Below, in pieces: positions 14,152 to 51,733 of a stretch of DNA of 63,792 nucleotides. The stretch is from Paramoeba atlantica (Eukaryota > Protista > Discosea), in NCBI GenBank assembly GCA_977017575.1, contig CDRNVI010000086.1, positions 1 through 63,792 of the forward strand, in the 5' to 3' direction. Position 1 is the first letter of the stretch; the number at the start of each line of letters is the position of its first letter. Made by a program: the position numbers and the translations under genes. The notes below the pieces were generated by a model. That model had not been told where the DNA came from. It saw only the letters and a list, made by a program, of their open reading frames with translations, and made no database searches.

Positions 14152-14434
14152 GAGTAACAGAGCTCATGCGATGATGAGCTGGAACGTGTGAATCAGTGCT
14201 CCACGCTAACACTCACATCTTTTCAACTGATTGAGAATATTATCATCAATTCACACATTGTTTGTGATGAAACCCTCCAAAACGGTGGAAATAAAAGATG
14301 CTCTATTCAGAGACATCATGATGGACATAACGTCGTTTACGTTAAAGGCAATGGCGATTCTCTCGCCCTGGTATGTCTGACTTCTCCGGGAGATGGGTAG
14401 GGATAAAACCTCAGCTAGCACCAATGCCACAAAT

Positions 14435-14837: not shown

Positions 14838-14913
14838 CCTCCGCCCTCTCCACCACCTCCAACCACCGTATTGCCGTACGGTGTTTTGACTATACAGTGA
14901 CATGCCTATACAC

Positions 14914-15296: not shown

Positions 15297-15642
15297 TCGG
15301 AGTATTGCTTCGAGGAGTCCAGCCATCGGATGCGTTACTTTACAAGGAAGTTATTGAGGGAGATACTAATCCCTCGCTACCGTAGGTTAATTCGCCGTGC
15401 CCGATTTCGTTCCCGATTTCGAAGACCGTAATACTTCGTACTCCGGAAGAGGCTCAAGTTTTTGTCGGAGATTGTCGCAAAGCTTTTGCCAGTGTTCTCG
15501 ATCTTGGGAGTAAACAAGAGCTTGTTCGAGCGTAATACCTAGATCGTTAAACTTGCCTCACTGGGGGAAATACTTTGTGTTCTTTCTTTAGTATTCCATT
15601 GAACAAGCTCGCGAAAAGCGGTCGAGTGCCTCAGCATGTGGC

Positions 15643-16003
15643 CAAAGTTTGAAGAACATGGTGCTCAGACGGCGAGTTCAAACCCACTCATCGCAATATT
15701 CCTGGCGGCCTCATCCAAAAGAGGCTCGGCTGAGAACCGACTAGGCCCAGTACTCGGAGGACCGTCCCGGACCCTCCCCTCAGGGAACCAGCTCCCTTAC
15801 CCGGCTTACACCTCTTGGGTAAGCCGTGTTGGCGTACAGTTCGTCGACGCAGCGTGTTGGCAACAGCACTTTGGTGCCGCCTTGGAAAAGCGGAAACTGG
15901 TAGAGGACGTCGGCCTCGGAACTTCCAAATCTGTCTGTGAAGGGTCTGGCTTGCTAGTGACCATCCGGAGCAATCCGGAATGATTTGAATTTTTTGGATT
16001 GGA
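15643..16003 (+). mobile_element. SINE1 (duplicate)
   Basis: Copy of 3230-3590. Confidence 0.9.
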
Positions 16004-16039
16004 GTGGGGACGCCAGGAATATTGCGATGAGCAGGTTTG

Positions 16040-16232
16040 ATCCAAAAAATAATAATCCAAATCATTCCGGATTGCTCCGGATGGTCACTGGCAAGGGGGA
16101 CCCTTCACAGATAGATTTGGAAGTTCCGAGGCCGACGTCCTCTACCAATTTTCCGCTTGCCCAAGGCGGCACCAACGTGCTGTTGCCAACACTGCGTCGA
16201 CGAACTGTACGTCAACACGTCTCACCCAAGAA
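16040..16232 (-). mobile_element. SINE1 3' half (duplicate)
   Basis: Copy of 3627-3819. Confidence 0.85.
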
Positions 16233-16443
16233 GTTTTTTTTTTTTTTTGCAATAAATAGGGGGGGAAGAGTAGGAGTTTATAGCAATAATAATAAAAAGA
16301 AGCAATTCATGCCCAATCCATCTGCGCGTTCCGGGCCGGGTCTTTCGACCACTCCTCGGCCTGACTTGTGAACCCTTCCCTTGTTATATGGGAGGGCGCA
16401 GGCGCGGGCTTGTGCCGACAGCGGCACGGTCACGAAACAGGAC

Positions 16444-18663
16444 TTTTTTTTTTGCAATTAATACGGGGGGAGAAGTATAAAATGCGGCATTGCATCTATA
16501 TTTTGACCCAGTAGACGAACCAAGTAGGTCCATTGGGGGGGCGGTATATGATTTATAAACAAGCAATCAAATTAGCAATTTCACTTGTTGTAGCCCAAAA
16601 CTAGCAATTCAACCTGCCTTAAGTTATTTATGATTCTGATAACAATAATAATAAAAATCAGAAGGAAGCAATCCAGGCCCAATCCTTCTCACCTTCCCAG
16701 ACGGCACTCGACGCCTTGCAGCCCGAGCACGGCTACCCAACCGTAGTTACCAGGACGGGCGTCCAACCCCGCATCGTGTAGTGTCTCAAGCCTTCTTTGC
16801 GTAAGCAGCTCGCAATTTAGGGGCTGCGCTGGAGCCTGGTTCAGTTCGGAGGTTCCGGGTCGGTCCTCCAGGGGAGCGGAGTTGGGTTTGGGCCTTGAAG
16901 GCACTCCTGATCGCTTTCCCTTTGTAGTGAGGCCGCCAGGTTGCGAGTTTTGTCGATAGCGGGAATCGGACCAACAACCTGCAGGTTGTAAGGCCCACCG
17001 TCTACCAACTACCCCCAATCAACCATCCGCGCCTTCCAAACTTTGCCCTCCTCTTTCCCTCACTCCCCCCCAAAAATCCATCCGCGCGTGCTCCACTCCT
17101 TCTTCCAACAGTGCGCGCTTCGGACCGGATCTCTAGACCTCTCCATGGCCTGGCTTGGGAACCCTTCCCTTGTTATAAGGGAGGGCGCAGGCGCGGGCAT
17201 GTGCCGACAGCGGCACGGTCACGAAGTTGGGTTTTGATCGCCGGACTCGGATGAATGTTCCGAACCCGTACCTATCTCACATTGGGGTACCTTGCTCGTG
17301 AAAGCGAGGCGTGAGGATAGGCACTGTCGGCTCGATCGGCCTCGGGCCGCTCTGGAGGCTACTCCTCCAGCGTTGCTATGGGGTCTTCGGAAGGTGAACG
17401 AGCAACCATCATGCGCGCTTGAAAGCGCATAAGGTGTGTTTAGTTCAGCGGAGATTCGGCTCGTTGCCTCACCTTCCGAAAGTAGACCCCCCGAGGCGTG
17501 CGAACACCTCTCACCGACTTTGCGGAGCACGGCTGAAGCGCTGGGGCTCTAGGCGCCATAACTTTCGACCATCATGGCCGTAAAGTCGCATCCTGCTTCT
17601 ATGGCTTCTCGGCGCTGCTTGCACTTGCCCATTGAGGAATAATGTTCGGCAAATGACCCCGCGGCAACCCAGCTAGCGTTTCGGACTTTGTCCGTATATT
17701 TTAATTGCTGAGCATGGGTGACCGCGAAGTCAAGCACAATGGGATTTCCAAGAAAAAGGCTGGGCAAGTATATGTTGCCAGGTCTGGTGAGGGCCCAACC
17801 TGGGCCCCTGTTCCCGAGACTCTTTTCTCGTTGAGGGGCGAGGCGGTCTCGACTGCACACGTCCGCGAACTGGTCCGTAACAGCGTTGCGCCTGGTCACA
17901 ATACCATGGCCATGTTTGCAAGACAGTGCATGATCCCCTTTGCTGTCAAGGGGGAGCGAGCATTTCGGCATGGGGAACGTGCTATCTTCATGGTGGATGT
18001 CCACGCCTAACCACCAACGGGCCAAAGTTCGGAATTGTGTGGGGGTAAAGGCGTGCCCAAGGTCTTTCAAAGGAGTCACAAAGGCCCAGCTGCTCGCTCC
18101 CGTGCCACACTGGGAGATCCACCTTGCACTGGTTCGTGCGTCAGTTGTCTCATATTCCTGGGAAAAGGCATGGGCTGCAATAGCATAACTGATTACCCGC
18201 TGGCTCGGGGTCTTCCCTTTGGGCCACTGTGGGGGTAACATTTCCTGGCATTCTTCAGAACCGTAGAGGGGAGTCGAGAGTCGGTAGGCATCCGTGGGTG
18301 TGTTGGCCGCGCGGGAAGTCGTACGAAGAACATGTCCCGGAGGCTCGTCCGGGGGGGGAGGATCATTCCCTGGCGGAGGGTGCCTTCTCTTCCGGTAGGA
18401 GTACGGCGCGCTCAGGGCCTTCTCGCATGGGGCGTTGGGAGTTGTGAGAACACGACCCCTGGGATCGAGGAGAGCAGTGCCGGCCGTCTGATTGATGTCG
18501 AGGAAGGCCTCCGAGAAACCTTCAGCGTCTTCGGGATCCCAGGAATCTTTGTCAGAGGCAAAGGCGACGGATGCAACGTAAGCCGCGGAAGCGTGGAGAG
18601 CTTCGGATCTCAGACCTAATCCCCCATGGCGCTTCAGCCGCTGTGCTTGAGATTGTGCTGACC
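16444..18663 (-). mobile_element. CRE-2 3' part (duplicate; contains SINE2 at ~16692-17013)
   Basis: Copy of 4031-6250. Confidence 0.85.
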
Positions 18664-18712
18664 TGTACAGAGGACAGATGATTGCCTCTTTTGAGACTAG
18701 GTATTGACGTCC

Positions 18713-21700
18713 TGCATCCCTAACGTTTGTTCAAAATTTCCATTGTACAATTCTTTTTTGACCTTCTTGATTGTTTTGTGCACCAATTATTTAATGTTAG
18801 TGTTTTCTGAAGAACTTTATGATCCAATAGTACCTTGACAATGGAATTTGGAGTATGCCAGACGCGTAAGTTTAAACTTTAATATAATAAAATAAAATAT
18901 CATTTCTTCTTTCAGTTAATGAAAATTCGTAACCAATTCGTAATCTTTACGGATTCTTTACGATTGCAGTGAACCCAGCCACGATGCTCAGGGTAGATAG
19001 TCGCGCAGTTGCGCAACTATTGTATATGCATTAAGCTTTTCAATCTCAAGTTGAAAAGCTTCTAGTACTTCAGGGACTTAAAGTTCGGCTTTCTTTGCTA
19101 GACAGGAAAGGAGATTTTTCGTATGGCTGTGTAAGAAACCGCCTTCTGTCATGGAGATGCAGCGAAAAAAGTCTTCATTAATCCCCTCTTCTCAACGTAT
19201 TTCTTCTGCTTTCTCTCAATAGCATTTTGCAGGAGCTGAGCTTCTGTCATTTTTCGATAGCTCGGGCTACCGGTGCGGACAACTGTGAGGTCGTAAAGTA
19301 CTTCACCCGTATGGGGCCACATAATTCCGAGGTCGGGGCCTGACCTTATTCTTCGTGCGCGGCACGGATGGTTATCAATCGCATCAGCGGAGACGTGTGC
19401 CTTGCACTTGATAGAAGGATGAATAAGTGCGAGGTTCTATGACGGACTGGAGGCCTGCTTTTGAGCAAAGTTCGGCTAGAAAGCGCACTAGAGATGAGTG
19501 TTTTCGTGTAGCGTTCATTCCAGAACACTTTGTACAACCCACAATGTGGTGAAGGATTTCCTCTGATTTTATCTGAGCAGCGCATCCAGGGCAACTCACT
19601 TGATCCGGCAACGAAGGCGGTTTGATGCCTAATCTAAACATGATAGCGTATCTGAAAAGGTAAGGATTAACGTATCCGCTAGTTGAAGGAAGATGTCGAA
19701 AGGCAGTCGTTCTGCGTTTTAGTATGGAGTCTATTCTGCTATCCTTACGTAACTCGGTGGCTAATAGTTTTTGTTCTGTCTTCATAGCTTTTGATGCTTG
19801 AATTCTGGCTGTCTGATGCTTGGCTGTGCGGCTTGAGCTTCCATTATCATCGGGAATGCCTCCTTTCGATTTGCGCAAAACTACCGGAGCTTTATTGGAT
19901 AGTGTTCGCTCATCAATCGATTTGCGCGCGGTGTCGAAAAAGAAACGATGTCTTAATGTTGACGGTGTCAAACCAAGTCCTCCTAGGTGTTGTGGGAGTG
20001 ACGATAGCTTGATCAGCAAATAGGATTGATCAGAGATAGGATCAGCAAAGAACCAGTGCGACACAATATCATTAACTTGTTCATCAAATTTTTGGGCCAT
20101 AAGAAGCGAGTCTTCTGGACGGTGTACACTCAGGTGATAATCATGACGTGGGAGCGCACAGCGTTGCAGTACAGCCAGTGAAATGTTGCTGGGCCCCATT
20201 CGACGAAGCCTACGGAACAGGCATTGGGGCTTCTTTAGTTTTTTGACCAGAAGTGAGCTGACCTCTTGGTGATCCCCGATGTGGGCTCCAAGGATTTTGA
20301 TTGTCTTGTCAGAATGCGTGACGCCTAGGGAGCGAAGAGCATCAGGATGGCTGTTCCGATTCTTACTGCTCTCAGCGTTGAACCATTCTGATTTTGAATA
20401 ATTTATGTGCAGGCCAAGGTCAGTGGATAGCTCTCTGAGATGTAAGAACGCGGCTTCCAGTGAGATGCGATTTTTTGAGGACAATGTAACGTCACCCATG
20501 GTCCGAGGGATTTCCGTATTCGCAATAAAACATGCGCATAAACGGCTTGAAAACTTTGTGTGCCTGCAGGGATTGAGCAATTGCTGAGAGCTGTGCAGTG
20601 TTATATGCGTTGGTGTAATCTACCGAAAGAATAGTGTGCCCGTTGCTGTAGTCATCAAGAAGCTCGTGAACGATTCCTTCACATGCATTTTTTTCTAAGA
20701 CACCACGTTGCATAGGGTGGAAGAACCTTTTCAACGAGTCTTCATGACGTTGCAGCAGGATTGAGCCACTTATTTTGAGCTTTCAAACAAACAAGCGAAA
20801 GCTAACAACGCCAGACCTACGAAACCCGAGCGGACCGAGGAAGTATCGCGGAGTAGCAGACGGAAGAAAATAGAAACTAGCGACGAAGTTCGTCTCGCAA
20901 AGTAGATCGAAGGAAAATATGCCCGTCACCTGAGCAGGAATGCTCTGAGGACGCAAAAGATGGTGTAGAATAGTAGAGCGATAACTGATAAGTAAGGTCA
21001 AATGCGTCTTCTCTTTCAATTTGAGTGTTTTATGAGAGTATGAATATATTCAGTGTTTCAACCGATTTATCAGTCATATAAGATAAGATAAGATATTTTG
21101 AGCATTGTGTCACCCATCGCTATCGGTCTTACCCCGTTATTCGGCTTTTCTAAGGCGATGATTCTACAACGTGTCAGACGGTTGCGAACTGATGTGCTTA
21201 TTTCTCCGTTGATGACATCTCTAATCATGTGGCACAAACCTGAACAACATTCCACGTCATCAGCCAGTAAGCGGAGGATGTTTTCGCTCAATCCCGTTGG
21301 GCCTGGGGTTCTCCATGCGCGAGTTTGTTTACCGCTGAGCGAACCTCGTCCATCTCGATTACGCCAGCCCGTGGGTATTCTACTGATGACGCAGGTGGTG
21401 GATCACCTGTGGGATGAAGGTCTTTCAATTTTCGCACTTTTTCGTCCACACTGAGTTGGGAGTCTACAGAAACGTTGTCCAGGACTCTGGTTGCTTTACT
21501 TAAATTTCCTGCACGAGCTGCATGGAGAGTATTGAGTTGCGTATTGAGTTGCGTATTGAGCGGCGGTCAACTTCGAGCTCCTTTACCTCCTCTTTGGATA
21601 AAAATACATTTTCCTTGGCATTGGCGCTCTTATGGCTATGCGGGATGCTGTCCCGTCTTTGGATAGCTTTCCGCACGCTTACTAGTGAGTCTCGTGGGGC

Positions 21701-22163
21701 GTTGAGGAATTTTTGCCATAATTTATCTTTTTCTGAGGATAGTTTAAGTCTCGGATAGTCTCTTATAATCGAACGGAAAATAGCTACCACATGCACAGAA
21801 AACGTCGGATCGATCTGGGAGAAAGAAGGCAAAGGCTCTAGGTCACACCCGTGATCTGTGTCGTCCGCATCTTCTGACGCGCATATCGTCGTTGAAACTT
21901 CACAATCTGGAACACGGCTTAGATGAGTTGCTCGGATGCCGAAAACCTTGATTTTCGTCGACTGGGGAAGATAAAGATTTCCAGAGGGCCCGGCTTCGTC
22001 AGGGGCTGGATGGTACGAAATTTTGATGTTCAACGCTTTCTTTCGCAGTTTTCTGGAAACAACTTCACCAATCGATTCGTAGATTCGATTCTGAGAGTTT
22101 CGAAAACACCACCGTACTGCACACGTCGTTCCTTTACCCCAATCCGAGATTTTCCGAAGAACG
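18713..22163 (-). mobile_element. CRE-1 (duplicate; contains the LINE-f insert at 20781-21093)
   Basis: Copy of 6300-9750. Confidence 0.85.
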
Positions 22164-22202
22164 TGGTCGGGAGCTCAAATCCGTGGTCGGGAGCTATGGG
22201 CG

Positions 22203-23358: not shown

Positions 23359-24608
23359 CTGCCTACGCCGCCGCGAGCCCTCTATATCTCTTGGGTTAAA
23401 ACCTCCTCATGAATTCTCTCAATCTATTCAAGAAATAGAATCCTTTGCCGCGCACGAGGCTCTTCTCATCGCATTGTCCTACGATGGAGATGTCATTTTG
23501 CACACGGACTCTGAGTATGTTTGGGATTTCTTTCATGGAGCTATCCATAGGTTCAGATTCATAGGATTTAAATCGTTTGAGGGAGGCGCTATACTTCAGA
23601 AATTGCAAGAAACATATATTTCGCTAAGAGGGACAAAGCACTTCTACTGCGTAAAAGTTAAAGCGCATAACGAAAATCCACATAATTATATGGCAGACTG
23701 GGTGGCTAAACAAGCAAGTAAAATAAGCAAGGGATAAAAGGCCTTGAGATTCTACGGCGAGATTCCTCATGCAGAAGACAAGCGCAAAAACCATACCAAT
23801 GGTGATTCTAATGGCAGCAAAATGCAGCGCAAACTTAAATCGGTAACCTCTAGCCAAATATGCACCCATGGTGAGCACGTAAAAATATTGCCAAAAAGTA
23901 GGACAGTTAGCAAAGGCAAACATACAGAGATAGAAACGGAAACGAAACGCACAAGATCACAAGAACGCGTACAGTCCAACAACACAAAAAGGCTAAAATA
24001 CATTGAGTCAAAGCAACAGTTGCCTCATGTAGCACGTATTGTTATTAGTGATCGGGTTAAATTTAGAGCTCCGCAAAGAAAGAGGAGTAATCAGTTATAC
24101 CAGGAGAATGATGAGCCAAGCTATTAAAGTCTGGAAACAAAGGGGTCACGTCAAAAAACACCCAGTAAAAGAGAGAACTGCGTCAAAAAGACAGAAAAGC
24201 GTCAGGGGAAAGACGATAGATCGCGAACTAAGAACGTATTACGAACACCAAAGAAATGGTACCCCCCTCATACCCCCCTTGATCGCATTTTCTGAACAGG
24301 CGAGGGATAGTGTGATAAGGTGGTATGCTGTTGTTTCGCGTGAAAATGTTTTATTAGGTAAACCGTTTGTGCTGAAAATGAAAAGTCGATTTCATATCAC
24401 AATTCTTTGACTAAGTACTGGAACGCCGTCCACCTCGAATGATTAGGATACATGGAAGTTGTTGCAAGATGTTTTTGAAAAGCTTCTGGTGAATATGTTA
24501 GTTTTGTGGACACCGCCAAAGTGATTTATGGGTAGGAGAAATTTGTGAAGCTTTCAACTAGGACATATTAATTTATTATCCCAGTGATGGTTGGTTGGTT
24601 GGTTGGTT
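23359..24608 (+). mobile_element. LINE-a 3' fragment (duplicate)
   Basis: Copy of 10965-12211. Confidence 0.9.
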
Positions 24609-24871
24609 ACTTTCGGAGCGCGGCAGACTTTCCTTGGGACAATGAGTTGGGCTCAGCGCGGCTAACGCCAGCGTTTTCAATATTCTGGGTTTCCTATCTT
24701 CTTCCTGGTTGCTCTTGAGATGGGCCCGGAATAAATTCATTAGGATGCAAGAGTGAAGGTGTCTCTGGGTTTTTTCCCATGGATCAGTATCAACCGTGTA
24801 ATGAATTTCCTGGCAAACATCTCAAGTGAGTCAGATCACAGATCTACAAATCAAGGACGATGATTCGTCAC

Positions 24872-31020: not shown

Positions 31021-32123
31021 ACACCATTTTTATAAGAACATTTTGATAAGAACACCATTTTGATAAGAACACCATTTTTATAAGAACACGATTTTTATAA
31101 TATGATTATAAAATAGTATATGATAATAAAAATATTGCGAATGCTGCCGGCGCGTGTAAGGGGACAGAGCTCCTTGAAACTCTTACACGAACCAAGCGTG
31201 TTCGGGGGGTTCTTTTTCGCCCACCGCAGCGGAGAGGACCTGCTAAACTTCGCCAGAAGGCGGCGCGAGCACTGATAAAGTTAGTTAGAGTCGGATCTCG
31301 GCTCCATGTGTTATGGAGGCACTTCACTAGTGAGAATGTGTTTCTTTGTTTGCAAGTCTATTTTACATAGGGTTTGCCTACGAGGGTGAGATATGAGGAG
31401 CGACCGTCAGAGATTACCTTTCCCCCCCTATGCCTCTTGCCCCAGAGTGATGAGAGCACAATGCTCCCTAGAGCAATGGACTGGTACCTTAATTAACGTC
31501 TACGCCAATGAGAGATTCCTCGAAGACCGCTCATGCGGAGTCCTTGGGGGACCTTGAACATGCGTGGAAGAAGGTTAGTGCAAAAGGTCGTCGGCGACCA
31601 ACAATTCCTATGGGCGACTCTAATGCACCATTAGCAATGGTATCAAATTATCGCATGGATTTACCGGCGGTATCGAGAATGAGAGGCCTTCTCTGCTCCA
31701 TTGGATGTAGATCAGCACACTCCCTCTGCCCCAGCCGGAAAAAAAAAATTGCACAAATTTTTTTTTGCAAAACGTGCGCATTGCCCAAGAAGGGAAAAGG
31801 CAAAAACATATGCAGGCCACTTGATCGTGTATTAGTGATTGAGCGTTTTTCTTCAAGCATAAGTAGACATAGGGTTCTTAAATCACCGATATCAACTACA
31901 CATTGTGCTGTGATTGTAAATTTGAAGATCAAATGAAAATGCGAGAACAAAAAGGGAAGCTGTGGCGTAATCTGGCCATGTTTCGGGGACCAAAAAAAGA
32001 AAAAGAATTCCAAGAACTAGTTTTTTCCGCTGCACGGAAAAAGGAAGACAGTACATGGGAACAGCTTTCTAAAATCATGGTAGACGGAGTAAATAAATTA
32101 GCCTGTAAGTCATCCGACAAAGA
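31021..32123 (+). mobile_element. LINE-h degraded 5' portion (5'UTR tandem repeats, N-terminal module, APE fragment, linker)
   Basis: LINVYA, MGDSNAPL, RPLDRVLV..PISTTHCAVIVNLKIK, GKLWRNL..STWEQL, all homologous to LINE-a/e; stops and frameshifts. Confidence 0.7.
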
Positions 32124-42608: not shown

Positions 42609-42872
42609 CCCAAGGCACATTCTCGCGGGATGCCGAGTTGCTCTAGATCAAGGGCGTTACACTTTCAGACACGACTTCATCTTACGGGCCCTAGCTTACC
42701 ATGTAAGCGAGTCCCCCCATACAGCTCTCTCTCATTTCGACCTACCTGGCATGCGACTCCCTCCAACGTGGCTAGCCGACAATGGCGGTATGCTGCGTCC
42801 GGACGGGTGGGTAAAGCTAAGGGGCGGGAAAGAGCTCATTATTGAACTAACTTGCCCATGGGAGGAGAATAA
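42609..42872 (+). pseudogene. HERO-like non-LTR C-terminal fragment (end of CCHC and RLE)
   Basis: RHILAGCRVALDQGRYTFRHDFILRALA, then after a frameshift MLRPDGWVKLRGGKELIIELTCPWEEN. Confidence 0.75.
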
Positions 42873-42874
42873 AG

Positions 42875-42960
42875 GGGCGGTGCGGGCGTAGGGGGCGGTG
42901 CGGGCGTAGGGGGCGGTGCTGGCGTAGGGGGCGGTGCTGGCGTAGGGGCGGTGCGGGCGT
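42875..42960 (+). repeat. Five tandem ~18-bp GGGGGCGGTGCGGGCGTA units (amplified 5' end of the SINE2 head)
   Basis: The last unit runs directly into GTTGGTAGACGG. Confidence 0.85.
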
Positions 42961-43580
42961 AGTTGGTAGACGGTGGGCCTTACAACCTGCAGGTTGTTGG
43001 TTCGATTCCCGCTATCGACAAAACTCGCAACCTGGCGGCCTCACTACAAAGGGAAAGCGATCAGGAGTGCCTTCAAGGCCCACACCCAACCCCGCTCCCC
43101 TGGAGGACCGACCCGGAACCGCAGAGCTGAACCAGGCTCCAGCGCAGCCGCTAAATTGCGAGCTGCTTACGCAAAGAAGGCTTGAGACACAGCCTACACG
43201 ATGCAACGGGGTGGACGCCCGTCCTGGTAGCTACGGTTGGGTAGCCGTGCTCGGGCCGCAAGGCGTCGAGTGCCGCCTGGGAAGGGGATAGCAAGACGAT
43301 GAAGGTCGGTGAAATGAGACTCTACCCCAACGGTTGGCGCTGCAGAGCCCTCCGTGTTCTTCTTCTTCTTCTTCTTCTTCTTCTTCTTCTTCTTCTTCTT
43401 CTTCTTCTTCTTCTTCTTCTTCTTCTTCTTCTTCTTCTTCTTCTTCTTCTTCTTCTTCTTCTTCTTCTTCTTCTTCTTCTTCTTCTTCTTCTTCTTCTTC
43501 TTCTTCTTCTTCTTCTTCTTCTTCTTCTTCTTCTTCTTCTTCTTCTTCTTCTTCTTCTTCTTCTTCTTCTTCTTCTTCTT
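42961..43580 (+). mobile_element. SINE2, full length, with ~75 CTT units
   Basis: A-box-like TAGTTGGTAG, CT-TAC-AA anticodon-like loop, B-box GGTTCGATTCCC; pure CTT run ~43356-43581. Confidence 0.9.
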
Positions 43581-43800
43581 CTGTTACAACGTAAGAAAAG
43601 GTTGTTTTCTTAACTGGTTTTAATAACAAGTGTTTTAGGATAGGATAGGATAGAATAGGATTGAGAAATGGTGAGGTGTAGAATTTTACGCCAAAAAGGC
43701 GCAGCACCATGATGAGGCTTCCCAAGGAAGCTCTCAAGTTGAGGAAGTTCCTCACCCAGGAACACACCTGACTTCAGGTTTTTTTTTTTTTGGACTTCAC

Positions 43801-43903
43801 GTTACCATAGGCCTAAATTTCCGTCCATGGAAAAAGCAAATCGGCTCACCGATTTCTAAGGAAGACCTCTCCAGGGCGGAAGCACGCTTGATACCGGTAA
43901 CAA
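43801..43903. repeat. Repeat V (~103 bp), copy 1
   Basis: Near-identical to 49396-49498; GTTACC..GGTAAC ends; internal AAATCGG/CCGATTT hairpin. Confidence 0.8.
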
Positions 43904-43982
43904 GCCCTGCCATCCTCAGCTTCGGCAGAAGAAGTGCGAGTGATCCCAACGGCCTGAGGAGTTAGGCCTGAGGAGTTCCACG

Positions 43983-44156
43983 TATATGTCGATAGCTATA
44001 TGTCGATAGATATGTCGATAGATATATGTCGATAACAATTTTTATTAAGATAACAATTTTTATTAAGATAACAATTTTTATTAAGATAACAATTTTTATT
44101 AAGATAACAATTTTTATTAAGATAACAATTTTTATTAAGATAATAATTTTTATTAA
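43983..44156 (+). repeat. ATATGTCGATAG-type units plus seven 18-bp GATAACAATTTTTATTAA units abutting the LINE-a ATG
   Basis: Seven units counted at 44031-44156. Confidence 0.9.
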
Positions 44157-47100
44157 TGGCAATTAATAATAATTGGGCGGAGGCGTCCGGACCTTTTGGG
44201 GGTTTCTTGGCGGTCAAAGAAAAACTCCGATTGGCCACGTGTTGTCGGGGAAACCTGTTTCTACCTAAAAAGCGGAAATGGGGAGTAGCCAAACTCCGGC
44301 CGCGGGACCTGTTTCGAATGTCATGTCTTTTGTCTCCTGGAAAACGCTCTGCTGTTGCCTGGAGTATGTCATATGATTTACGTACGAGGTTGTGGGAGGG
44401 GACTGTTAAATCTATGCTTCCGGACGGTAGACGTCTAGTGAAGTATGATTTAGTGGATGATCGCCTTTTCCTGTTTCCTCCGAAAGATGAACGAGTTCAA
44501 ATTCTGGGTGGTAGGGTAGGTTTCTTGGGAAAATGGAAATCCAAACGAAATAGGAAACGCACCAACTGTCCTCGAAGTGGCTACCGTGGTCAGGGATCCG
44601 AGAAGAATGCTAAGAGAGGGGGTTTTACGATAAGTACCCTAAAAGTGGACACCTTGAAAGTCAAAGCGACTGATACTTTCACGCTTCGGAAGTCGATTAG
44701 ACTATATCAAGTGGCAGGTCTCATGAGGAGTCAACATGTTGACATCATGGCGCTTCAGGAAACAAGGTTAAAATTTGATGATAAGGATTCTATTTTACAT
44801 AGGCAGCTCTTTTTAAACGGCATCTCACTTCACCTCTACCTGATGAGTGCAATCAACGGGTACAATGGCATGGCATTTTTGAGCACTAAACCTCTATCTG
44901 TTCAGAAGATTAGCGATCGCATTATGAGTGGACACTTCATTCTAGGTGAAACGAAAGCCTGCATTTACAACGTCTATTCACCTACAGCGAAAGCTAACAA
45001 ATCGACGCAACAAAGTTTTGACGAAGACTTATTCGATGCATGGTATGACTATGATAGTATGGTAAGAATCATTAGTGGAGATCTAAATTCGCCGCTACTA
45101 AACCCAGGGGGGAGGAAATGTTATACAAAGCGTGCAAAACAGTTACGAAAGCTACTATGCTCGCTTGGAGCTCAATCTGTACATGAAGGCTGTTGTGCAA
45201 GAAGAAAATGGACGTATAGGTTTCCTAAAACTCGTCGGCATCCAGAGGGAATGACCAAGCAACTTGACCACATCGTTGATAACAAAAGGTTTTTCTCTTC
45301 TATACGATCCACAAAATGCCACATCGCACCCATACCTACCAGACATTGTGCTTTGACATCGAACTTCAATTTTCGATGGAAAAATCAAAAACTGTCTCAA
45401 CAAAAGCCTTTTTGGGAGGCATTGAAAAATGATGAAATCCGAAATAAGTTTGTTTCGAAAGTAAAGGAATCATTAAAATCTGTGCCAAAAAGAATTCGGT
45501 CGGAGGATGAGAAGTCCGAAAACGCGCCAAAAATGGAAATAGATAAGGCCAGCGAAATATCTTGGACAAGACTCTCTTCTGCTGTTAGAGTGTCCGCATC
45601 TAGTCTTCCCAATAAAACTAGTAACGCAAAAGAAATTCGCATTGATGCTGAAACAGATCTATCCGGATTTGTCATGAAGTCTCTGCTGAAGATCGTGGGC
45701 AATAAAACTATGTTTGCTACTGCATCAAAAGAATTCTCTGAAAAACTAGACTCCTCTATTATAAATGAGTGCGACGCCCTGGAAAAAGAGCTTAAATCAA
45801 CTCCAAAATCCGCGTACAGAACAATTCGAAAAATTGTAGGGGACAAGAAGCAAGATTTTCCGCTATTTTCAACTACGGTAAACAGCAGCCTTAATATAGT
45901 GAAGAATCATTTCAGCATGGTAGGGGGTAGTGCTTACAAAGGTCATGAAGCAATAAGTTTACCTACTGCACCAAAACGACTGGCAAAAATTGATGATGGT
46001 GAATTTCGAGTGGAGGAACTAACTGCTGCGATGGTAAAGATTAAGTCAGGAAAAGCTACAGGCGATGATAATATCCCGGTTGAAGCTCTACGTGCTATTT
46101 CAGCTGATCAAGACTTGCGTAATGCTCTCCTGGATATAATGAACGAAGTACGAAAAACCGGAAAAGCGGATGAATCTTGGAAATCGATATTGCAGGTCCC
46201 ATTGCCAAAGAAAGGTAACTTGCGCTCACTCACAAATTGGAGACCAATCTGTCTTGTGAATCATGTAGTGAAGATTTTGAATCGAATCATTTTAGACAGA
46301 ATACAACCAGCAGTGGAAAGTTCGCTTCGCGGGAATCAATTCGGATTTCGACCTAACCGCTCAACAGCTGGCGCTCAGGCAACGTTTTTAGAAATAATGG
46401 AAAAATCGCGCCGAGGGGCTGGGGTGTTCGTCTGTTTCGTCGACTTTCAACAAGCCTTTCCTTCATTATCATTCGCTGCGATAAAAGAGACATTACGTGC
46501 TTTAGATATTTCTGAAAATCTCAGTTCTACGATCATGTGTATTTATCAAAATCTCAAATCGCACGTGAAAACACCATACGGTAATACAGACTCATTTCCA
46601 CTTTTACAGGGGACTCTTCAAGGTGACGTTCTGGCCCCATACCTGTTTATTATGGTTCTTGATCGTATTTTGGTTGAATCTATCGACATAAATCGCTTAG
46701 GGCTTGTGACACATAGCTCAAGAACTAGGGGCAGAGGCCTAAAGGAACTGCGTATATCTGATATAAATTATGCTGATGATATAGTTCTCTTCTCCGAATC
46801 CAAGGAGGAGCTAAGCACAATGTTGCACAAACTTAAAACTTCCGCAGAAAAAGCTAATTTGAAAATAAATGTCGGACCAAACGAAACGGCATGGATGACA
46901 CTAGGTAAAGTTAAGGATGATGGAAGACCTCTGCAAGTAGCGACACTCGGCGATATACCAAAAGTTACATCTTATCGCTACTTGCGTAGCACTCAGAACG
47001 AGGAGGATCGCAGCTCAAACTCACAAGAACGTGTACGATTAGGTTGTGCAATAATGCGCAAACTCAAAGCCATATGGGGTTCTACTATATCACCAAAAAG

Positions 47101-47449
47101 AAAATTACACATCTTTAAGTCCCTCGTTCAATCAGTGGTCTACTATAATCCAGGGACTTGGAATTTAAATCAGAAAGAGCTACATGAAGTGGAAGTCCAA
47201 ATGAACAGAATGAGGAGGGTCGTATTGGGAGTCAAGTGCTCGAAAGAGGCGCATTGCAGAGTAGACTCTCTTTACCCCACTGACCTAAAGCCCAATACTG
47301 TGATACAATTGCAACGTGCCTCGCTAGTAGGCCACCTTATTCGTCACCCTACTCCATTCGTAACTGCCGTACTATGGAGAACGAATGATGAGAGTTCCAA
47401 GCCCTCGCTATCAGAAAGATGTGCAAAAGAGTTACATTCTGACGTATGA
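44156..47449 (+). CDS. APE endonuclease-reverse transcriptase polyprotein
   Basis: APE: LQETR, NVYSPT, GDLNS, LDHI, TRH; RT: PKKG..NWRPI, QFGFRPNRST, VDFQQAF, LQGDVLAPYLF, YADDIVL, LKIN, YRYL. Confidence 0.9.
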   Translation: MAINNNWAEASGPFGGFLAVKEKLRLATCCRGNLFLPKKRKWGVAKLRPRDLFRMSCLLSPGKRSAVAWSMSYDLRTRLWEGTVKSMLPDGRRLVKYDLVDDRLFLFPPKDERVQILGGRVGFLGKWKSKRNRKRTNCPRSGYRGQGSEKNAKRGGFTISTLKVDTLKVKATDTFTLRKSIRLYQVAGLMRSQHVDIMALQETRLKFDDKDSILHRQLFLNGISLHLYLMSAINGYNGMAFLSTKPLSVQKISDRIMSGHFILGETKACIYNVYSPTAKANKSTQQSFDEDLFDAWYDYDSMVRIISGDLNSPLLNPGGRKCYTKRAKQLRKLLCSLGAQSVHEGCCARRKWTYRFPKTRRHPEGMTKQLDHIVDNKRFFSSIRSTKCHIAPIPTRHCALTSNFNFRWKNQKLSQQKPFWEALKNDEIRNKFVSKVKESLKSVPKRIRSEDEKSENAPKMEIDKASEISWTRLSSAVRVSASSLPNKTSNAKEIRIDAETDLSGFVMKSLLKIVGNKTMFATASKEFSEKLDSSIINECDALEKELKSTPKSAYRTIRKIVGDKKQDFPLFSTTVNSSLNIVKNHFSMVGGSAYKGHEAISLPTAPKRLAKIDDGEFRVEELTAAMVKIKSGKATGDDNIPVEALRAISADQDLRNALLDIMNEVRKTGKADESWKSILQVPLPKKGNLRSLTNWRPICLVNHVVKILNRIILDRIQPAVESSLRGNQFGFRPNRSTAGAQATFLEIMEKSRRGAGVFVCFVDFQQAFPSLSFAAIKETLRALDISENLSSTIMCIYQNLKSHVKTPYGNTDSFPLLQGTLQGDVLAPYLFIMVLDRILVESIDINRLGLVTHSSRTRGRGLKELRISDINYADDIVLFSESKEELSTMLHKLKTSAEKANLKINVGPNETAWMTLGKVKDDGRPLQVATLGDIPKVTSYRYLRSTQNEEDRSSNSQERVRLGCAIMRKLKAIWGSTISPKRKLHIFKSLVQSVVYYNPGTWNLNQKELHEVEVQMNRMRRVVLGVKCSKEAHCRVDSLYPTDLKPNTVIQLQRASLVGHLIRHPTPFVTAVLWRTNDESSKPSLSERCAKELHSDV

Positions 47450-48101
47450 GATTCTAAAACTTGGTCAAAATCGGTCTCAATGGTGCAAGAAACTTGAAAT
47501 TCTTCAAAATCAGCTTGAACCCAGGCCCTCGTACACTAAAACAACTTCAAAACTATGGGAAAATCTTTTGGTAAAGGGGGTAAACAAGGGGTGCTACGAA
47601 ACCCTACAATACATTGAAGAAGGGCAGCAACCATTTCCAATCGGGCCAAATGAAACACACATTTATACAGATGGAGCACGAATCGTTAAAAAGGATGAAA
47701 CTCACACAGGCTGTGGGGTAGTCTGCCTACGCCGCCGCGAGCCCTCTATATCTCTTGGGTTAAAACCTCCTCATGAATTCTCTCAATCTATTCAAGAAAT
47801 AGAATCCTTTGCCGCGCACGAGGCTCTTCTCATCGCATTGTCCTACGATGGAGATGTCATTTTGCACACGGACTCTGAGTATGTTTGGGATTTCTTTCAT
47901 GGAGCTATCCATAGGTTCAGATTCATAGGATTTAAATCGTTTGAGGGAGGCGCTATACTTCAGAAATTGCAAGAAACATATATTTCGCTAAGAGGGACAA
48001 AGCACTTCTACTGCGTAAAAGTTAAAGCGCATAACGAAAATCCACATAATTATATGGCAGACTGGGTGGCTAGACAAGCAAGTAAAATAAGCAAGGGATA
48101 A
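47385..48101 (+). pseudogene. RNase H domain of LINE-a (frameshifted continuation)
   Basis: YTDG, EIESFAAHEAL, HTDSEYV, KVKAH, MADWVA: D/E/D/H/D catalytic pattern present. Confidence 0.85.
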
Positions 48102-49254
48102 AAGGCCTTGAGATTCTATGGCGAGATTCCTCATGCAGAAGACAAGCGCAAAAACCATACCAATGGTGATTCTAATGGCAGCAAAATGCAGCGCAAACTT
48201 AAATCGGTAACCTCTAGCCAAATATGCACCCATGGTGAGCACGTAAAAATATTGCCAAAAAGTAGGACAGTTAGCAAAGGCAAACATACAGAGATAGAAA
48301 CGGAAACGAAACGCACAAGATCACAAGAACGCGTACAGTCCAACAACACAAAAAGGCTAAAATACATTGAGTCAAAGCAACAGTTGCCTCATGTAGCACG
48401 TATTGTTATTAGTGATCGGGTTAAATTTAGAGCTCCGCAAAGAAAGAGGAGTAATCAGTTATACCAGGAGAATGATGAGCCAAGCTATTAAAGTCTGGAA
48501 ACAAAGGGGTCACGTCAAAAAACACCCAGTAAAAGAGAGAACTGCGTCAAAAAGACAGAAAAGCGTCAGGGGAAAGACGATAGATCGCGAACTAAGAACG
48601 TATTACGAACACCAAAGAAATGGTACCCCCCTCATACCCCCCTTGATCGCATTTTCTGAACAGGCGAGGGATAGTGTGATAAGGTGGTATGCTGTTGTTT
48701 CGCGTGAAAATGTTTTATTAGGTAAACCGTTTGTGCTGAAAATGAAAAGTCGATTTCATATCACAATTCTTTGACTAAGTACTGGAACGCCGTCCACCTC
48801 GAATGATTAGGATACATGGAAGTTGTTGCAAGATGTTTTTGAAAAGCTTCTGGTGAATATGTTAGTTTTGTGGACACCGCCAAAGTGATTTATGGGTAGG
48901 AGAAATTTGTGAAGCTTTCAACTGGGACATATTAATTTATTATCCCAGTGATGGTTGGTTGGTTGGTTGGTTACTTTCGCGGGAGGAGGAAGCGTAGGTT
49001 AATTCGCCGTGCCCGATTTCGTTCCCGATTTCGAAGACCGTAATACTTCGTACTCCGGAAGAGGCTCAAGTTTTTGTCGGAGATTGTCACAAAGCTTTTG
49101 CCAGTGTTCTCGATCCTGGGAGTAAACAAGAGCTTGTTCGAGCGTAATACCTAGATCGTTAAACTTGCCTCACTGGGGGAAATACTTTGTGTTCTCTCTT
49201 TAGTATTCCATTGAACAAGCTCGCGAAAAGCGGTCGAGTGCCTCAGCATGTGGC

Positions 49255-49394
49255 CAAAGTTTGAAGCACATGGTGCTCAGACGGCGAGTTCAAACCCACT
49301 CATCGAAATATTCCTGGCGGCCTCATCCAAAAGAGGCTCGGCTGAGAACCGACTAGGCCCAGTACTCGGAGGACCGTCCCGGACCCTCCCCTCA
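49255..49394 (+). mobile_element. SINE1 fragment within a 402-bp segment shared with 2968-3369
   Basis: 48993-49394 is near-identical to 2968-3369. Confidence 0.85.
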
Positions 49395-49395
49395 C

Positions 49396-49498
49396 GTTAC
49401 CATAGGCCTAAATTTCCGGCCATGGAAAAAGCAAATCGGCTCACCGATTTCTCAGGAAGACCTCTCCAGGGCGGAAGCACGCTTGATACCGGTAACAA
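49396..49498. repeat. Repeat V, copy 2
   Basis: Near-identical to 43801-43903. Confidence 0.8.
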
Positions 49499-49499
49499 T

Positions 49500-49721
49500 T
49501 CATGGTTTTTCACTCGTCCCTTGCGCACGCTTTGCACTGTACTCGCCGAGACGTGCGCCTCGCTTGAGCTCCCGGCTCACAGTAGCCTGGCTTACTCCAA
49601 GTTTTTCTGCTATTTCTTCTTGGGAGAAGCCTTGTTGATTATAGAGCACTGCGATAGTTTCCCGGGCCTCGGTGTCTAGGCGTTTCGTTTTACGTTGGGA
49701 AACTGACATTCTGGAGGTCAA
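49500..49721 (-). pseudogene. IS30-like transposase N-terminal HTH fragment (second, diverged family)
   Basis: KRLDTEARETIAVLYNQQGFSQEEIAEKLGVSQATVSRELKRGARLGEYSAKRAQ. Confidence 0.55.
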
Positions 49722-49737
49722 ATAAAATTCTGAAGGT

Positions 49738-50628
49738 CAATGTGCTATATGCATTATCAATGTGCTATATGCATTATCAATGTGCCGCTTAATATGCATT
49801 ATCAATGTGCCGCTTAGTATGCATTATCAATGTGCTATATGCAATATCAATGTGCTATATGCATTATCAATGTGCCGCTTAATATGCATTATCAATGTGC
49901 GGGCGCCGGGGGGTCCAGGGGGGGGGGTCCAGGGGGGGAGCTCATGGTCGAGCAAATTTTTTCGAAAAAATTAGTTTTTAAAAAAAAAACCGCAGAAAGG
50001 GTAGCCGGGGTCTTGGCTCGAATTTTCCACCACCTTACCCGGGGGTGACCCCCCCGCGTATCCGCAGGACGGGTCCGCCAAGTTCGGAATTTTTCGGAAA
50101 AAAGATTTTGAAAAAAAATTCAACTTGGCGAAAAAAATGACAAAAAAAATATTTTTCCAAAATCGTTTCCTCTATTGTATTTTGATAGTTTGGGGCCTAC
50201 ACTAGCTTTCTCGGCCGTTGTTTTCACAAGGTATCCTTTCTTCAAGCCGTGGTGCTCCCCTCAAAATGACCCATTTTTGACTAGAAAAGGTGAAAAAGTG
50301 TTTTTCGGACCTGAAGGGGCATTTTTGTGTCGAAAGAATGGTATGGAGTCGTATTCTCTACCCAATACGTTCGGTAGGCTTTTATTCCTGCCCACGAGTG
50401 ATCTCCCACGCGCAATGTCGGATTTAGTGCTCTGAGAGCAAAAATATGCGAAAATCACCCCATTTTTACCCAAAATTCGGCTATTTTTGGCTATAATCTT
50501 TCCGTTTTCCAGGCTAAATTTTTTTTTTTAGGCTCTTCGTTGAACGCGGCGGTAGTTTTCAACGCGAAGCCCGCAGTATGAGTGACTTCTAAGTTGAAAA
50601 CAACCACCGCGTTTAACGAAGAGCCTAA
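49738..50628 (+). mobile_element. Family X with 20-bp satellite
   Basis: Homologous to 33640-34446. Confidence 0.8.
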
Positions 50629-50639
50629 AATTTATCGAA

Positions 50640-50765
50640 GATTGAAGATGGGGTATTCCTAAGAGGAAATATCTCCCACACCCCGACATACCGTGCAATC
50701 TCCAGTGCCCTGGCTGCAACATTCTCCTTGACTCTTCTTCAGCTCTGCGGCACTTGATGCAACCA
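50640..50765 (+). pseudogene. CRE-3-like CCHC fragment
   Basis: LPHPDIPCNLQCPGCNILLDSSSALRHL versus CRE-3 LSHPNLPANVQCPGCQVIYDSATALRHI. Confidence 0.65.
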
Positions 50766-50791
50766 ATACTCGAGACGCTGGCAAAAAAAAA

Positions 50792-51360
50792 AAAGTGGAC
50801 GAGGGAGATACTAAAAACACCTCAGGCAAACCACTACAAAAATGCAACAGTATCTCCCGTTAAAGATTCTTTTGTCCCATCAGAATCCTTTACAAATCGG
50901 GAGATAACGTTTCATTTTTGTGGTGGTTTGCCTGAGGTGTTTTTAGCGGAGGTGGCGGAGTGGCAAGAATTCAAAGTTTGAAGCACATGGTGCTCAGAAG
51001 GCGAGTTCAAACCCGCTCATCGCAATATTCCCGGCGGCCTCACTCTAAGAGGCTGGGCTGATAACCGACTAGGCCCAGTACTCGGAGGACCGTCCCGGAC
51101 CCTCCCCTCGGGGAACCAGCTCCCTTACCCGGCTTACACCTCTTGGGTAAGCCGTGTTGACGTACAGTTCGTCGACGCAGCGTGTTGGTAACAGCACGTT
51201 GGTGCCGCCTTGGGCAAGCGGAAACTGGTAGAGGACGTCGGCCTCGGAACTTCCAAATCTGTCTGTGAAGGGTCTGGCTTGCCAGTGAACATCCGGAGCA
51301 ATCCGGAATGATTTGGATTTTTTGGATTTTGGATCTCCCTCGTCCACTTTAGCCTGGATT
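50792..51360. mobile_element. MITE-2 interrupted by SINE1 in its right TIR
   Basis: AAAGTGGACGAGGGAGATAC.. left; ..ATCTCCCTCGTCCACTTTAGCCTGGATT right. Confidence 0.8.
50947..51333 (+). mobile_element. SINE1, full length
   Basis: Complete head, body and TTTTGGA-type tail. Confidence 0.9.
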
Positions 51361-51733
51361 CGGATTATAATATTTAGGTAGCAAAAAAACATTTCGAATG
51401 CTATTTGTTTTTAAGTTCATTCTTAATTCTTGGGCAGAACGAACTGAGGTGAACTATCTATGGGTACTATTAGGTGACTATACTATTGAGGGAGATACGG
51501 AGTATCTAACTCGCTTACTAAGGTTAATTCCAAAACTTGAAAATGCCCCTCAAAGAAGCGAGAGATCGAGTTTTTTCAAAATTTTAAAATGTAGCAGTAG
51601 CTCATTAGATGAACTCTTTAATGCTCGAAAAATCATCTACAACGACCTCATTTCCCAAATTGTAGAACACTTTTGGTAAAAAAAAGTGCGTCTGCAAAGG
51701 TCTGCGATACGACAAACTGGTTGACTAAGGGGA

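Follow-up and report, generated by a model that had tools for sequence, protein, structure and literature searches.

What lies ahead of the endonuclease in a LINE with a single open reading frame, and could it help to choose where the element inserts? The question is raised by an element in a 63,792-nucleotide stretch of Paramoeba atlantica DNA (the window), in which a sequence-only reading had noticed a peptide preceding the APE domain and had likened it to Tudor/Agenet-type barrels. To our knowledge, the insertion-site choice of LINEs without a sequence-specific endonuclease is largely an open question, and the chromatin-reader tethering that we know of so far comes from LTR elements and retroviruses.

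A single-ORF LINE and its N-terminal module

The element has the order APE-RT-RNase H, and with APE and RT in one ORF, a 3' tail and many copies that vary at the 5' end it has the features of an APE-type non-LTR retrotransposon (Table 1). The peptide noticed earlier was found where it had been placed, ahead of the APE domain, running from P61 (44336) to P109 (44482) in frame 2 of the forward strand; the range first given for it, 44240-44490, corresponds to residues 29-112. From the 5' end of the element to the ATG there are only 125 bp, made of 18-bp repeats, and there is no ORF1. Homology among copies begins within this array, whose repeat copy number is variable, and most subfamilies have related arrays with 18-20-bp units upstream of the ATG. 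At the other end, homology with other copies stops at ~48970-48983. Contigs from three other runs differ from the window by a 2-base indel behind 47446, close to the break in the window copy, and the C42 and C54 copies have uninterrupted frames of 1493 residues. The nearest relatives of the RT are environmental proteins carrying RNase H. The RTE-like label of the sequence-only reading is not established by what was found: PF20049 is present in RT relatives at 28-33% identity, and Pfam DUF6451 gave a below-threshold match only, in the window LINE proteins. A sequence-specific target was considered and rejected, since independent young copies have no homology in common in their 5' flanks.

Table 1. 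Positions of the LINE and its parts in the window
Feature	Position	Strand	Basis
LINE element (approximate limits)	44031-48972	+	
Presumed 5' UTR, tandem array of seven 18-bp repeats (unit GATAACAATTTTTATTAA) reaching the ATG	44031-44155	+	TRF
Long ORF, frame 2, 1097 aa	44156-47449	+	
Start codon and subfamily-specific extension, aa 1-8	44156-44179	+	Subfamily alignments
Whole module (leader plus barrel), aa 9-127	44180-44536	+	
Leader, aa 9-58	44180-44329	+	A1 conservation; AF2 pLDDT 76-87; relatives' domain coordinates
Predicted Spin/Ssty-like Tudor barrel, aa 59-123	44330-44524	+	AF2, Foldseek, VIA-align, ESM Atlas, profile
Candidate cage codon W69	44360-44362	+	
Candidate cage codon W80	44393-44395	+	
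Candidate cage codon Y97	44444-44446	+	
Candidate cage codon F105	44468-44470	+	
Family signature F107-P108-P109	44474-44482	+	
Basic linker, aa 124-159, NLS-like, probably disordered	44525-44632	+	pLDDT <65; charge
APE endonuclease	44633-45277	+	Pfam Exo_endo_phos, aa 186-374, E 4e-8
Reverse transcriptase	46205-46870	+	Pfam RVT_1, aa 684-905, E 1.8e-27
Frame break in window copy	47440-47452	+	ORF stop at 47449; RNase H in another frame
RNase H	47649-48083	+	Pfam RNase_H, E 2.4e-15, on ORF 47385-48101
3' end: stem-loop ACTGGGA...TCCCAGT (48921-48949), then (TGGT)n tail	48921-48972	+	Sequence

The majority of subfamilies begin at M-A-E-A-S-G-P, without the extension of residues 1-8. The leader that follows has an invariant S11-G12, a helix at 15-25, a strand at 32-35 and a second helix at 49-58, together with the motifs RGNLFLP (R31, F35) and AKLRxR (K46, L47, R48, R50); it is restricted to the clade of the window LINE, and relatives with tandem barrels lack it. 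The linker has the pattern R.RKRK.C.R.G with R133 and G142 conserved, and the APE domain begins with a conserved TLNVDTLK...LQETR.

The N-terminal 181 residues have at least 139 genomic matches in 45.7 Mb, mostly full length and down to ~30% identity, many of them in open frames of 1300-1660 residues. These matches include at least 17 non-redundant subfamilies, 29-70% identical and readily alignable, between which dN/dS is 0.18-0.42. This is a coding module that purifying selection maintains. Across 34 sequences W69, F107, P108 and P109 are invariant, while conservation of W80, G82 and Y97 is 90% or higher. Conservation between families, which the sequence-only reading had asserted from a second family, LINE-h, is borne out here on stronger evidence than LINE-h itself provides. 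LINE-h motifs are located at 834, 13246 and 31203, and the proposed homology of its start to the module holds (hhalign E 2e-10), for residues 22-84 only. LINE-h at 834/13246 was rejected as an independent family with a whole module because the ORF there is a truncated chimera, in which residues 1-65 are the LINE start and residues 57-295 a zinc-finger part from a different element; the copy at 31101-31554 retains an LPFPP remnant in a different frame. Another candidate, the ORF at 9090-9761 on the reverse strand, was considered as a barrel in a different type of element and set aside as unproven (HMM iE 0.005 in a search of the window only, hhalign probability 18%).

Kinship of the barrel with Spindlin

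AF2 modeling from a 34-sequence alignment gave pLDDT 86-93 over residues 20-120 and predicted two helices and a strand (residues 15-58) followed by a five-stranded barrel (residues 64-122, with strands at 64-71, 78-87, 93-97, 104-107 and 114-122). When modeled alone the barrel retained a pLDDT of 89 and a pTM of 0.73. The Spin/Ssty fold (Pfam PF02513) consists of four core strands and one extra strand in ~50-70 residues, and the predicted barrel, with five strands at pLDDT ~90, has this composition. AlphaFold with Foldseek had been named at the outset as the check on the module, and the check returned a barrel with Spindlins on top: they took ranks 1-31 and 45 of the 50 top places for the whole-module model and ranks 1-42 for the barrel-only model (TM 0.64-0.65, r.m.s.d. 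2.8 Å, 29% identity), with E-values of 0.008-0.03. VIA-align gave Spindlins as its best 24 entries and aligned 69 of 73 residues with Spindlin1 at Z 8.2; when 48,161 chains were scanned independently of Foldseek, Spindlin-4 came out on top (Z 5.5), and the ESM Atlas ranked the Spin/Ssty cluster first. The best structural match by Foldseek, VIA-align and ESM Atlas was Tudor-like repeat 1 of the Spindlin Spin/Ssty domains, at 25-29% identity in the Foldseek and VIA-align alignments, and other Tudor-type domains (SAWADEE, RDM15, Esa1 and Sds3) scored lower than Spindlin, at Z 3.9-5.5. On the strength of these models we are confident that the N-terminal module of the LINE carries a five-stranded Tudor-like barrel.

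Sequence comparison leads to the same family. A profile of 37 barrels that includes environmental relatives (A3) found 17 distinct matches among PDB sequences, all of them Spindlins, with E-values between 8.6e-6 and 9e-4; the match ranked after them is at E 0.16. At the level of profiles this shows the predicted barrel to be a distant homologue of the Spindlin Spin/Ssty repeats, matching repeat 1. The alignment lays W, W.G and KYD of the LINE on Spindlin1, pairing W69 with W62, W80 with W72 and Y97 with Y91; W62, W72 and Y91 of Spindlin1 line the R8me2a pocket (pocket 1), which additionally requires F251 of repeat 3 (PMC3967050). The fourth LINE position, 105, is F or L and aligns with Y98. 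Conservation of the aromatics across families, which the sequence-only reading had made a condition of its proposal, holds in the 37 barrels: all have W or F at position 69, 35 have W at position 80 and 35 have an aromatic at position 97; position 105 is aromatic in 19, and leucine takes its place in about half of the sequences. The alignment thereby shows aromatics kept at three of the four candidate equivalents of the pocket-1 cage (W69, W80 and Y97).

Single-sequence and narrower searches returned less. Pfam found no Tudor-type family in the whole ORF or its 181-residue N-terminus, and the window protein had no Spin-Ssty match at E ≤10; among 34 members the one Tudor match was BAHCC1-like, at E 0.084. 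The within-genome profile (A1) had no match at E ≤10 among PDB sequences, nor had residues 1-181 in a word-indexed protein search. The Pfam Spin-Ssty model matched relative P0031 at E 8.5e-5, and the best family member, with 22.7 bits, stayed below the cut-off of 25. A PF02513 search of the whole genome had no match, and because control genomes gave none either the search carries no weight as evidence of absence. Of the original Tudor/Agenet assignment the Tudor-like half stands, on AF2, Foldseek and the profile, with Spin/Ssty as its closest form; the Agenet half does not, its matches being weak and single (P0023, E 0.017; AGDP3, E 0.28) and Spindlin the better one.

The likeness to the repeats of Spindlin1-4 (PF02513; PDB 4MZF, 5Y5W) extends from the fold to the motif G.R[IV]...W / W.G.V / [IV].YD and the aromatics within it. 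A Spindlin protein proper, however, needs three repeats, interlocked in one globular unit, whereas the window LINE has one barrel (two in some relatives) and no equivalent of F251, and so we regard the barrel as a relative of the Spin/Ssty repeat, not as a Spindlin. It further differs in the [FL]PFPP after strand 4, in the helical leader at its N terminus and in a surface that is basic rather than acidic, and while Spindlin is an animal host protein the LINE barrel is fused to an endonuclease, in a protist-size genome.

Among related environmental LINEs the barrel occurs singly, as two tandem barrels, or C-terminally. In P0063 and P0068 it is positioned after RNase H, and P0010 and P0041 combine a barrel with a C-terminal PHD finger. 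The domain has been shuffled inside one LINE lineage, in N-terminal, tandem and C-terminal positions and with PHD, and this lineage is frequent in environmental eukaryote data and missing from annotated databases.

What the module may bind

The barrel type suggests, without proving, chromatin-guided insertion. We think it probable, if only just, that a selected, folded module, with a Spindlin-like barrel bearing a candidate methyl-Lys/Arg cage and with a basic surface that holds DNA, tethers the APE-RT to a chromatin state. The accessory module of ~125 residues, a leader peculiar to the clade (two helices, one strand) packed ahead of the barrel, is joined to the APE endonuclease through the basic, probably disordered linker. 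In such a mechanism the cage would recognize a lysine or arginine in methylated form, in all likelihood one on the nucleosome, and DNA would be gripped by the basic surface and the linker in the style of PWWP/Tudor nucleosome readers. Cage and DNA contacts combined would keep the APE-RT at one kind of chromatin and shift target-primed reverse transcription (TPRT) towards it; the chromatin in question would be the TE islands where copies accumulate. Clusters of copies are seen on C3 (five of seven matches within the first 41 kb), on C43 (five matches at 44-121 kb) and on C63 (all four matches within the last 171 kb), and the window region has a duplicate on C40; such clustering can also be explained by counter-selection of genic insertions, by contigs broken at repeats or by segmental duplication.

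The mean net charge is +6.5 in the leader, +4.8 in the barrel and +11.2 in the linker, a total of about +22. Because the module is so strongly basic, binding to nucleic acid or to the nucleosome is a serious rival to plain histone-tail reading, and nucleic-acid binding would explain the charge no less well. By analogy it is also a counter-indication to targeting, since the H3-binding surface of Spindlin1 is acidic (PMC3967050). The module might chiefly bind nucleic acid, either the element's own RNA in place of the absent ORF1 protein (for RNP formation, cis-preference and chaperoning) or target DNA beside the endonuclease, with the aromatics stacking on bases and forming no methyl cage. The lack of an ORF1 in the element is in keeping with this, as are the structural neighbors after the Spindlins, which are RNA-binding barrels: ribosomal bL19, the next class in VIA-align (Z up to 6.4), RimP, Spt5 KOW and the EDC3 LSm domain. 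One environmental relative, moreover, matches KOW6_SPT5 at E 1.5e-4 to 6e-4. We nevertheless judge nucleic acid an unlikely main ligand, as statistical support exists for no sequence relatives but the Spindlins, which read methyl marks, and conservation falls exactly on the cage positions; the PHD finger of related LINEs is another histone reader, and tandem duplication of barrels is typical for histone readers. A cage and a positive charge can also coexist: the PWWP domain of LEDGF/p75 has an aromatic cage and a basic DNA-binding surface and tethers lentiviral integrase to marked nucleosomes. LEDGF/p75 is a recruited host factor and the LINE barrel is element-encoded, but a nucleosome tether modeled on PWWP and Tudor domains would reconcile the cage with the charge.

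The cage might instead read a methylated non-histone host protein (an arginine-methylated RNP, Sm or Argonaute/PIWI-type protein) and help the element to assemble its RNP, enter the nucleus or evade silencing, with no part in choosing the insertion site. Tudor domains of the 'royal family' as a class bind methyl-arginine proteins. The Spindlin pocket with which the LINE residues align accommodates dimethyl-arginine, while Spin/Ssty proteins have been described as readers of histones (PMC3967050); the co-occurrence of PHD in relatives likewise indicates chromatin, and we consider a non-histone ligand improbable. It is less probable still that the barrel is a mere structural or oligomerization scaffold, or that it resembles Spindlin only as small barrels in general resemble one another, with neither ancestry nor ligand in common, for although small barrels are widespread, Z 7-8 is frequent between unrelated models, the Foldseek E-values always exceed 0.001 and the Pfam Spin-Ssty cut-off is not reached, four independent searches arrived at one family, the next profile match is four orders of magnitude worse than the best, the structural alignments are 25-29% identical and surface-type aromatics are preserved across very divergent barrels.

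Chromatin readers in other retroelements and the place of the LINE

Chromatin tethering as proposed for the LINE has its closest analogy in chromoviruses, Ty3-Gypsy elements with an integrase chromodomain such as MAGGY, which likewise encode a 'royal family' barrel with an aromatic cage (a candidate one in the LINE). The MAGGY chromodomain is cited in a preprint on chromatin evolution as targeting H3K9me regions (10.1101/2021.11.30.470311). Chromoviruses, as LTR elements, have an integrase and a C-terminal chromodomain, whereas the LINE is a non-LTR element that would use TPRT and has its Spin/Ssty-type barrel at the N terminus, with targeting as a proposed role. A Tudor-type reader domain also occurs in Gypsy-10_Ec32 of Ectocarpus, to its authors' knowledge the first TE reported with one (2025, PMC12477816); that element is LTR/Gypsy with the Tudor domain C-terminal to Pol, and the comparison with the non-LTR LINE and its N-terminal barrel is one of domain class. 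Capture of histone readers by retroelements is further known from retrotransposon-PHD fusions, for example a PYGO-like PHD in cnidarian retrotransposons (Grau-Bove et al. preprint), with a reader fold other than that of the LINE barrel; P0010 and P0041 have a barrel and a PHD finger. PHD and Chromo make up most of the fusions named in that preprint; SNF2_N remodelers and SET methyltransferases come next, with a few Bromo cases that were not validated, and a Tudor or Spin/Ssty-TE fusion is not named in its text.

More broadly, and only tentatively, we propose that a widespread and unannotated lineage of protist LINEs uses Spin/Ssty barrels of its own, in single, tandem or C-terminal arrangement and some with PHD, to read a histone methyl mark and steer TPRT into chromatin that bears it, TE islands or centromeres for example. 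If this is true, it would be the first non-LTR retrotransposon guided by a chromatin reader, and the LINE counterpart of chromoviruses. A Tudor-type domain, very recently described in a Gypsy element, is now seen in non-LTR elements too, and a conserved Spindlin-type barrel fused to an endonuclease offers a testable handle on the site choice of LINEs. Should the module bind nucleic acid instead, it would be a novel kind of ORF1 substitute.

A single-ORF LINE with a conserved N-terminal module

The ORFs, the Pfam domains and the ends of the homology between sister copies together define a single-ORF LINE of 4.9 kb, arranged as module, APE, reverse transcriptase (RT) and RNase H, and without an ORF1. 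This homology starts within the 18-bp array upstream of the ATG and stops at about 48972. The frame of the window copy is broken near 47446 by a 2-base indel relative to the contigs of three public runs, which carry two bases more at this position; the missing bases place its RT and RNase H in different frames, and sister copies on contigs C42 and C54 of the genome have open frames of 1493 aa. Pfam gave no match within the first 181 residues of the window ORF, even at E 1, and DUF6451 matched this ORF only below threshold. The perfect microsatellite just 5' of the LINE creates spurious poly-E, poly-L, poly-S and poly-F ORFs.

Coordinates of the LINE, of the LINE-h ORF and of associated sequences (window positions unless a contig of the searched genome, G000, is named)
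Feature	Position	Strand	Remarks
Long ORF	44156-47449	+	1097 aa; ORF listing
Second ORF, overlapping, other frame	47385-48101	+	ORF listing; carries Pfam RNase H
APE	aa 186-374 of long ORF	+	Pfam Exo_endo_phos
Reverse transcriptase	aa 684-905 of long ORF	+	Pfam RVT_1
Peptide P61 to P109, before APE	44336-44482	+	quoted in the sequence-only reading
18-bp repeat upstream of ATG	44031-44155	+	seven copies
3' end	48921-48972	+	ACTGGGA...TCCCAGT stem-loop, then (TGGT)n tail
(TTC)75 microsatellite	43357-43582
LINE-h ORF copies	834-1736; 13246-14148; G000:C40:803307-804208
3' fragments, same LINE subfamily	11142-12218; 23536-24615		about 1.08 kb
224-aa ORF and its duplicate	9090-9761; 21503-22174	-	weak motif G..CAVRW ... 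GEVV ... IKISY
Tandem array, period 3420 bp	G000:C71:30161-49365		6 units
Tandem array, period 3740 bp	G000:C61:1112-16269		5 units

A search of the 45.7-Mb genome with the 181-aa N-terminus found 139 matches, at identities from 100% to about 30%; most of them span residues 2-180, and many lie within open frames of 1300-1660 aa. Modules extracted from 50 loci and freed of sequences more than 90% identical left 17, which align cleanly and confirm the sequence-only claim that a module common to several families precedes the APE. Among 34 within-genome modules S11, G12, R31, F35, R48, W69, F107, P108, P109 and G142 are invariant, and G32, P37, K46, L47, R50, G62, A66, W80, G82, Y97, R120 and R133 are at least 90% conserved. 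Subfamily pairs give dN/dS of 0.18-0.42 at dS of 0.46-1.7, which shows that the module is translated and maintained by purifying selection. The ORF of most subfamilies begins directly with M-A-E-A-S-G-P. Tandem repeats of 18-20 bp lie immediately 5' of the start codon in nearly every subfamily (the window array and loci L002-L050), in 2 to >80 copies of related units (GAYC..T-rich..TTATTAA or TTGTAA), and may represent a monomer-type 5' UTR or internal promoter.

Sharing between families had been argued from LINE-h, another LINE start in the window (RGVLFRP, GPAKLR and VGSRLHVVW motifs, at 834, 13246 and 31203); the sharing stands on the 17 subfamilies, but the LINE-h ORF does not serve as its proof. 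It is homologous to the module, over aa 22-84 only (hhalign probability 96.8%, E 2e-10). Its first ~65 residues are 50-69% identical to the beginnings of numerous long frames of APE-LINEs, residues 57-295, with C2H2-like fingers, are 86-89% identical to a different element, and the joined form occurs at only three places in the genome, so that the ORF is a chimera in which a LINE start (aa 1-65) is fused to the zinc-finger region of a second element (aa 57-295). A further copy at 31101-31554 still carries a remnant of LPFPP, in another frame. Within the window, 12.4 kb are directly duplicated (834 to 13246, 5136 to 17549, 6971 to 19384), and the two 3' fragments, 99-100% identical, lie inside the duplicated unit. 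The first ~65 codons of a LINE module also recur, in a 142-aa frame, in each unit of the C71 and C61 arrays, which form a satellite built from a LINE 5' end. The 224-aa ORF was considered as a barrel of another element type and rejected as unconvincing (HMM iE 0.005, hhalign probability 18%).

A Spin/Ssty-type barrel and its candidate cage

The AlphaFold2 model of the within-genome alignment has pLDDT of 86-93 at residues 20-120, with a leader (helix 15-25, strand 32-35, helix 49-58) and a five-stranded barrel (64-71, 78-87, 93-97, 104-107, 114-122); confidence is low for the basic stretch beyond residue 125. In a Foldseek search of the PDB with the whole module, Spindlins occupy ranks 1-31 and 45 of the top 50 ranks (E from 0.008, probability 1.0, identity mostly 26-30%, 19-30% overall), the other entries being YopQ and two giant hemoglobins. 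VIA-align, which does not depend on Foldseek, placed Spindlin-4 first in a scan of 48,161 chains (Z 5.5), followed by the Tudor-type domains of SAWADEE, Esa1, RDM15 and Sds3 (Z 3.9-4.2), and the top ESM Atlas match is a Spin/Ssty cluster. The barrel modelled alone, from 37 barrels including environmental relatives (pLDDT 89, pTM 0.73), has only Spindlins among its first 42 Foldseek matches (TM 0.64-0.65, rmsd 2.8 Å over 65 columns, 29% identity). With VIA-align it superposes on Spindlin1 at Z 8.2, 69 of 73 residues falling on chain residues 50-120, i.e. repeat 1; 24 Spindlin entries score 7.0-8.2, and the next class, ribosomal bL19, at most 6.4. The Tudor-like assignment of the sequence-only reading is therefore supported, and sharpened to the Spin/Ssty type, with the aromatic positions W69, W80 and Y97 kept.

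The 37 barrels have the consensus G.R[IV].[IV].[WF] ... W.G[TV]V ... [IV].[YW]D ... [FL]PP, and a profile of their alignment gave 17 distinct matches against all PDB sequences (E 8.6e-6 to 9e-4), every one Spindlin-1, -2B, -3 or -4, with the next match at E 0.16. Pfam Spin-Ssty matched the environmental relatives P0031 (E 8.5e-5, 22.7 bits, below the cut-off of 25) and P0038 (E 0.11), and Agenet gave a single match among the relatives (E 0.017). Spindlin1 takes up H3R8me2a in a pocket lined by W62, W72, Y91, Y98 and F251, and H3K4me3 in a cage formed by the corresponding residues of repeat 2 (Su et al. 2014, PMC3967050). In our alignment, with numbering verified on full-length chain 7e9m_A, the tryptophan ending strand 1 falls on W62, that of W.G on W72, the tyrosine of KYD on Y91 and window position 105 on Y98. 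Across the 37 barrels, W or F occupies position 69 without exception and W occupies position 80 in 35; an aromatic residue stands at position 97 in 35 and at position 105 in 19, the others having L at 105, and F is present at position 107 in 31.

Relatives outside the genome

A word-indexed protein search with the module returned no match, which justified an exhaustive search with its 119-position profile; among 1.84 billion representatives only 38 proteins reached E <=0.001. Each belongs to an unnamed environmental assembly (ENA, JGI or Logan), on a contig typically of 4-5 kb that amounts to a whole LINE (locus L051 is one such environmental contig), and their Pfam domains identify them as LINEs. 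By RT, too, the closest relatives are unnamed environmental proteins, so the lineage is real, widespread and unannotated. P0011, P0015, P0055 and P0061 have one N-terminal module followed by APE-RT-RNase H; in P0010 and P0041 a PHD finger follows at the C-terminus (Pfam E 6.6e-5); P0063 and P0068 carry the barrel C-terminally, after RNase H. Two tandem barrels without the leader precede the APE in a more distant group, P0016, P0018, P0022-26, P0029, P0031, P0034-36, P0038 and P0044. Within this one lineage of LINEs, reader-type domains have been shuffled.

Chromatin targeting or nucleic-acid binding as possible roles

The proposed chromatin-targeting role of the module is plausible. A nucleic-acid-binding domain is a serious rival, since leader, barrel and linker are strongly basic (mean net charge +6.5, +4.8 and +11.2), the structural neighbours after Spindlin are the RNA-binding barrels bL19, RimP, KOW and LSm, the element has no ORF1, and the pocket of Spindlin1 is completed by F251 from the third repeat whereas the single LINE barrel lacks this contribution. 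The H3-binding surface of Spindlin1 is moreover acidic (PMC3967050), unlike the LINE module.

Copies lie in islands (five of seven matches on C3 in the first 41 kb, five on C43 at 44-121 kb, four on C40 at 750-780 kb, all four on C63 in the last 171 kb), which selection, assembly breaks at repeats or segmental duplication would explain equally well. The window region shares 96-99% identity with C40:772-805 kb (the LINE with its flanks, 42656-51500, with G000:C40:772521-781074), a large segmental duplication or second haplotype, and the two LINEs are therefore not independent insertions. Young copies are located inside other repeats, and a sequence-specific target was rejected because no sequence is common to the 5' flanks of those that inserted independently. 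None of the public runs listed with the element is an RNA run.

An Ectocarpus Gypsy element whose C-terminus bears a Tudor domain was, to its authors' knowledge, the first such transposable element (2025, PMC12477816), and the text of a preprint on chromatin evolution names no Tudor or Spin/Ssty fusion with one (10.1101/2021.11.30.470311). We found no LINE-encoded Tudor or Spindlin-like domain in the full-text literature searched, which is not proof of absence. The module is a royal-family reader-type domain encoded by a transposable element, in this case one of the non-LTR class. A cage is combined with a DNA-binding surface in PWWP and in some Tudor domains. We favour a module of this kind, a predicted nucleosome reader in which aromatic cage and DNA-binding surface act together, which would fit cage and charge alike.
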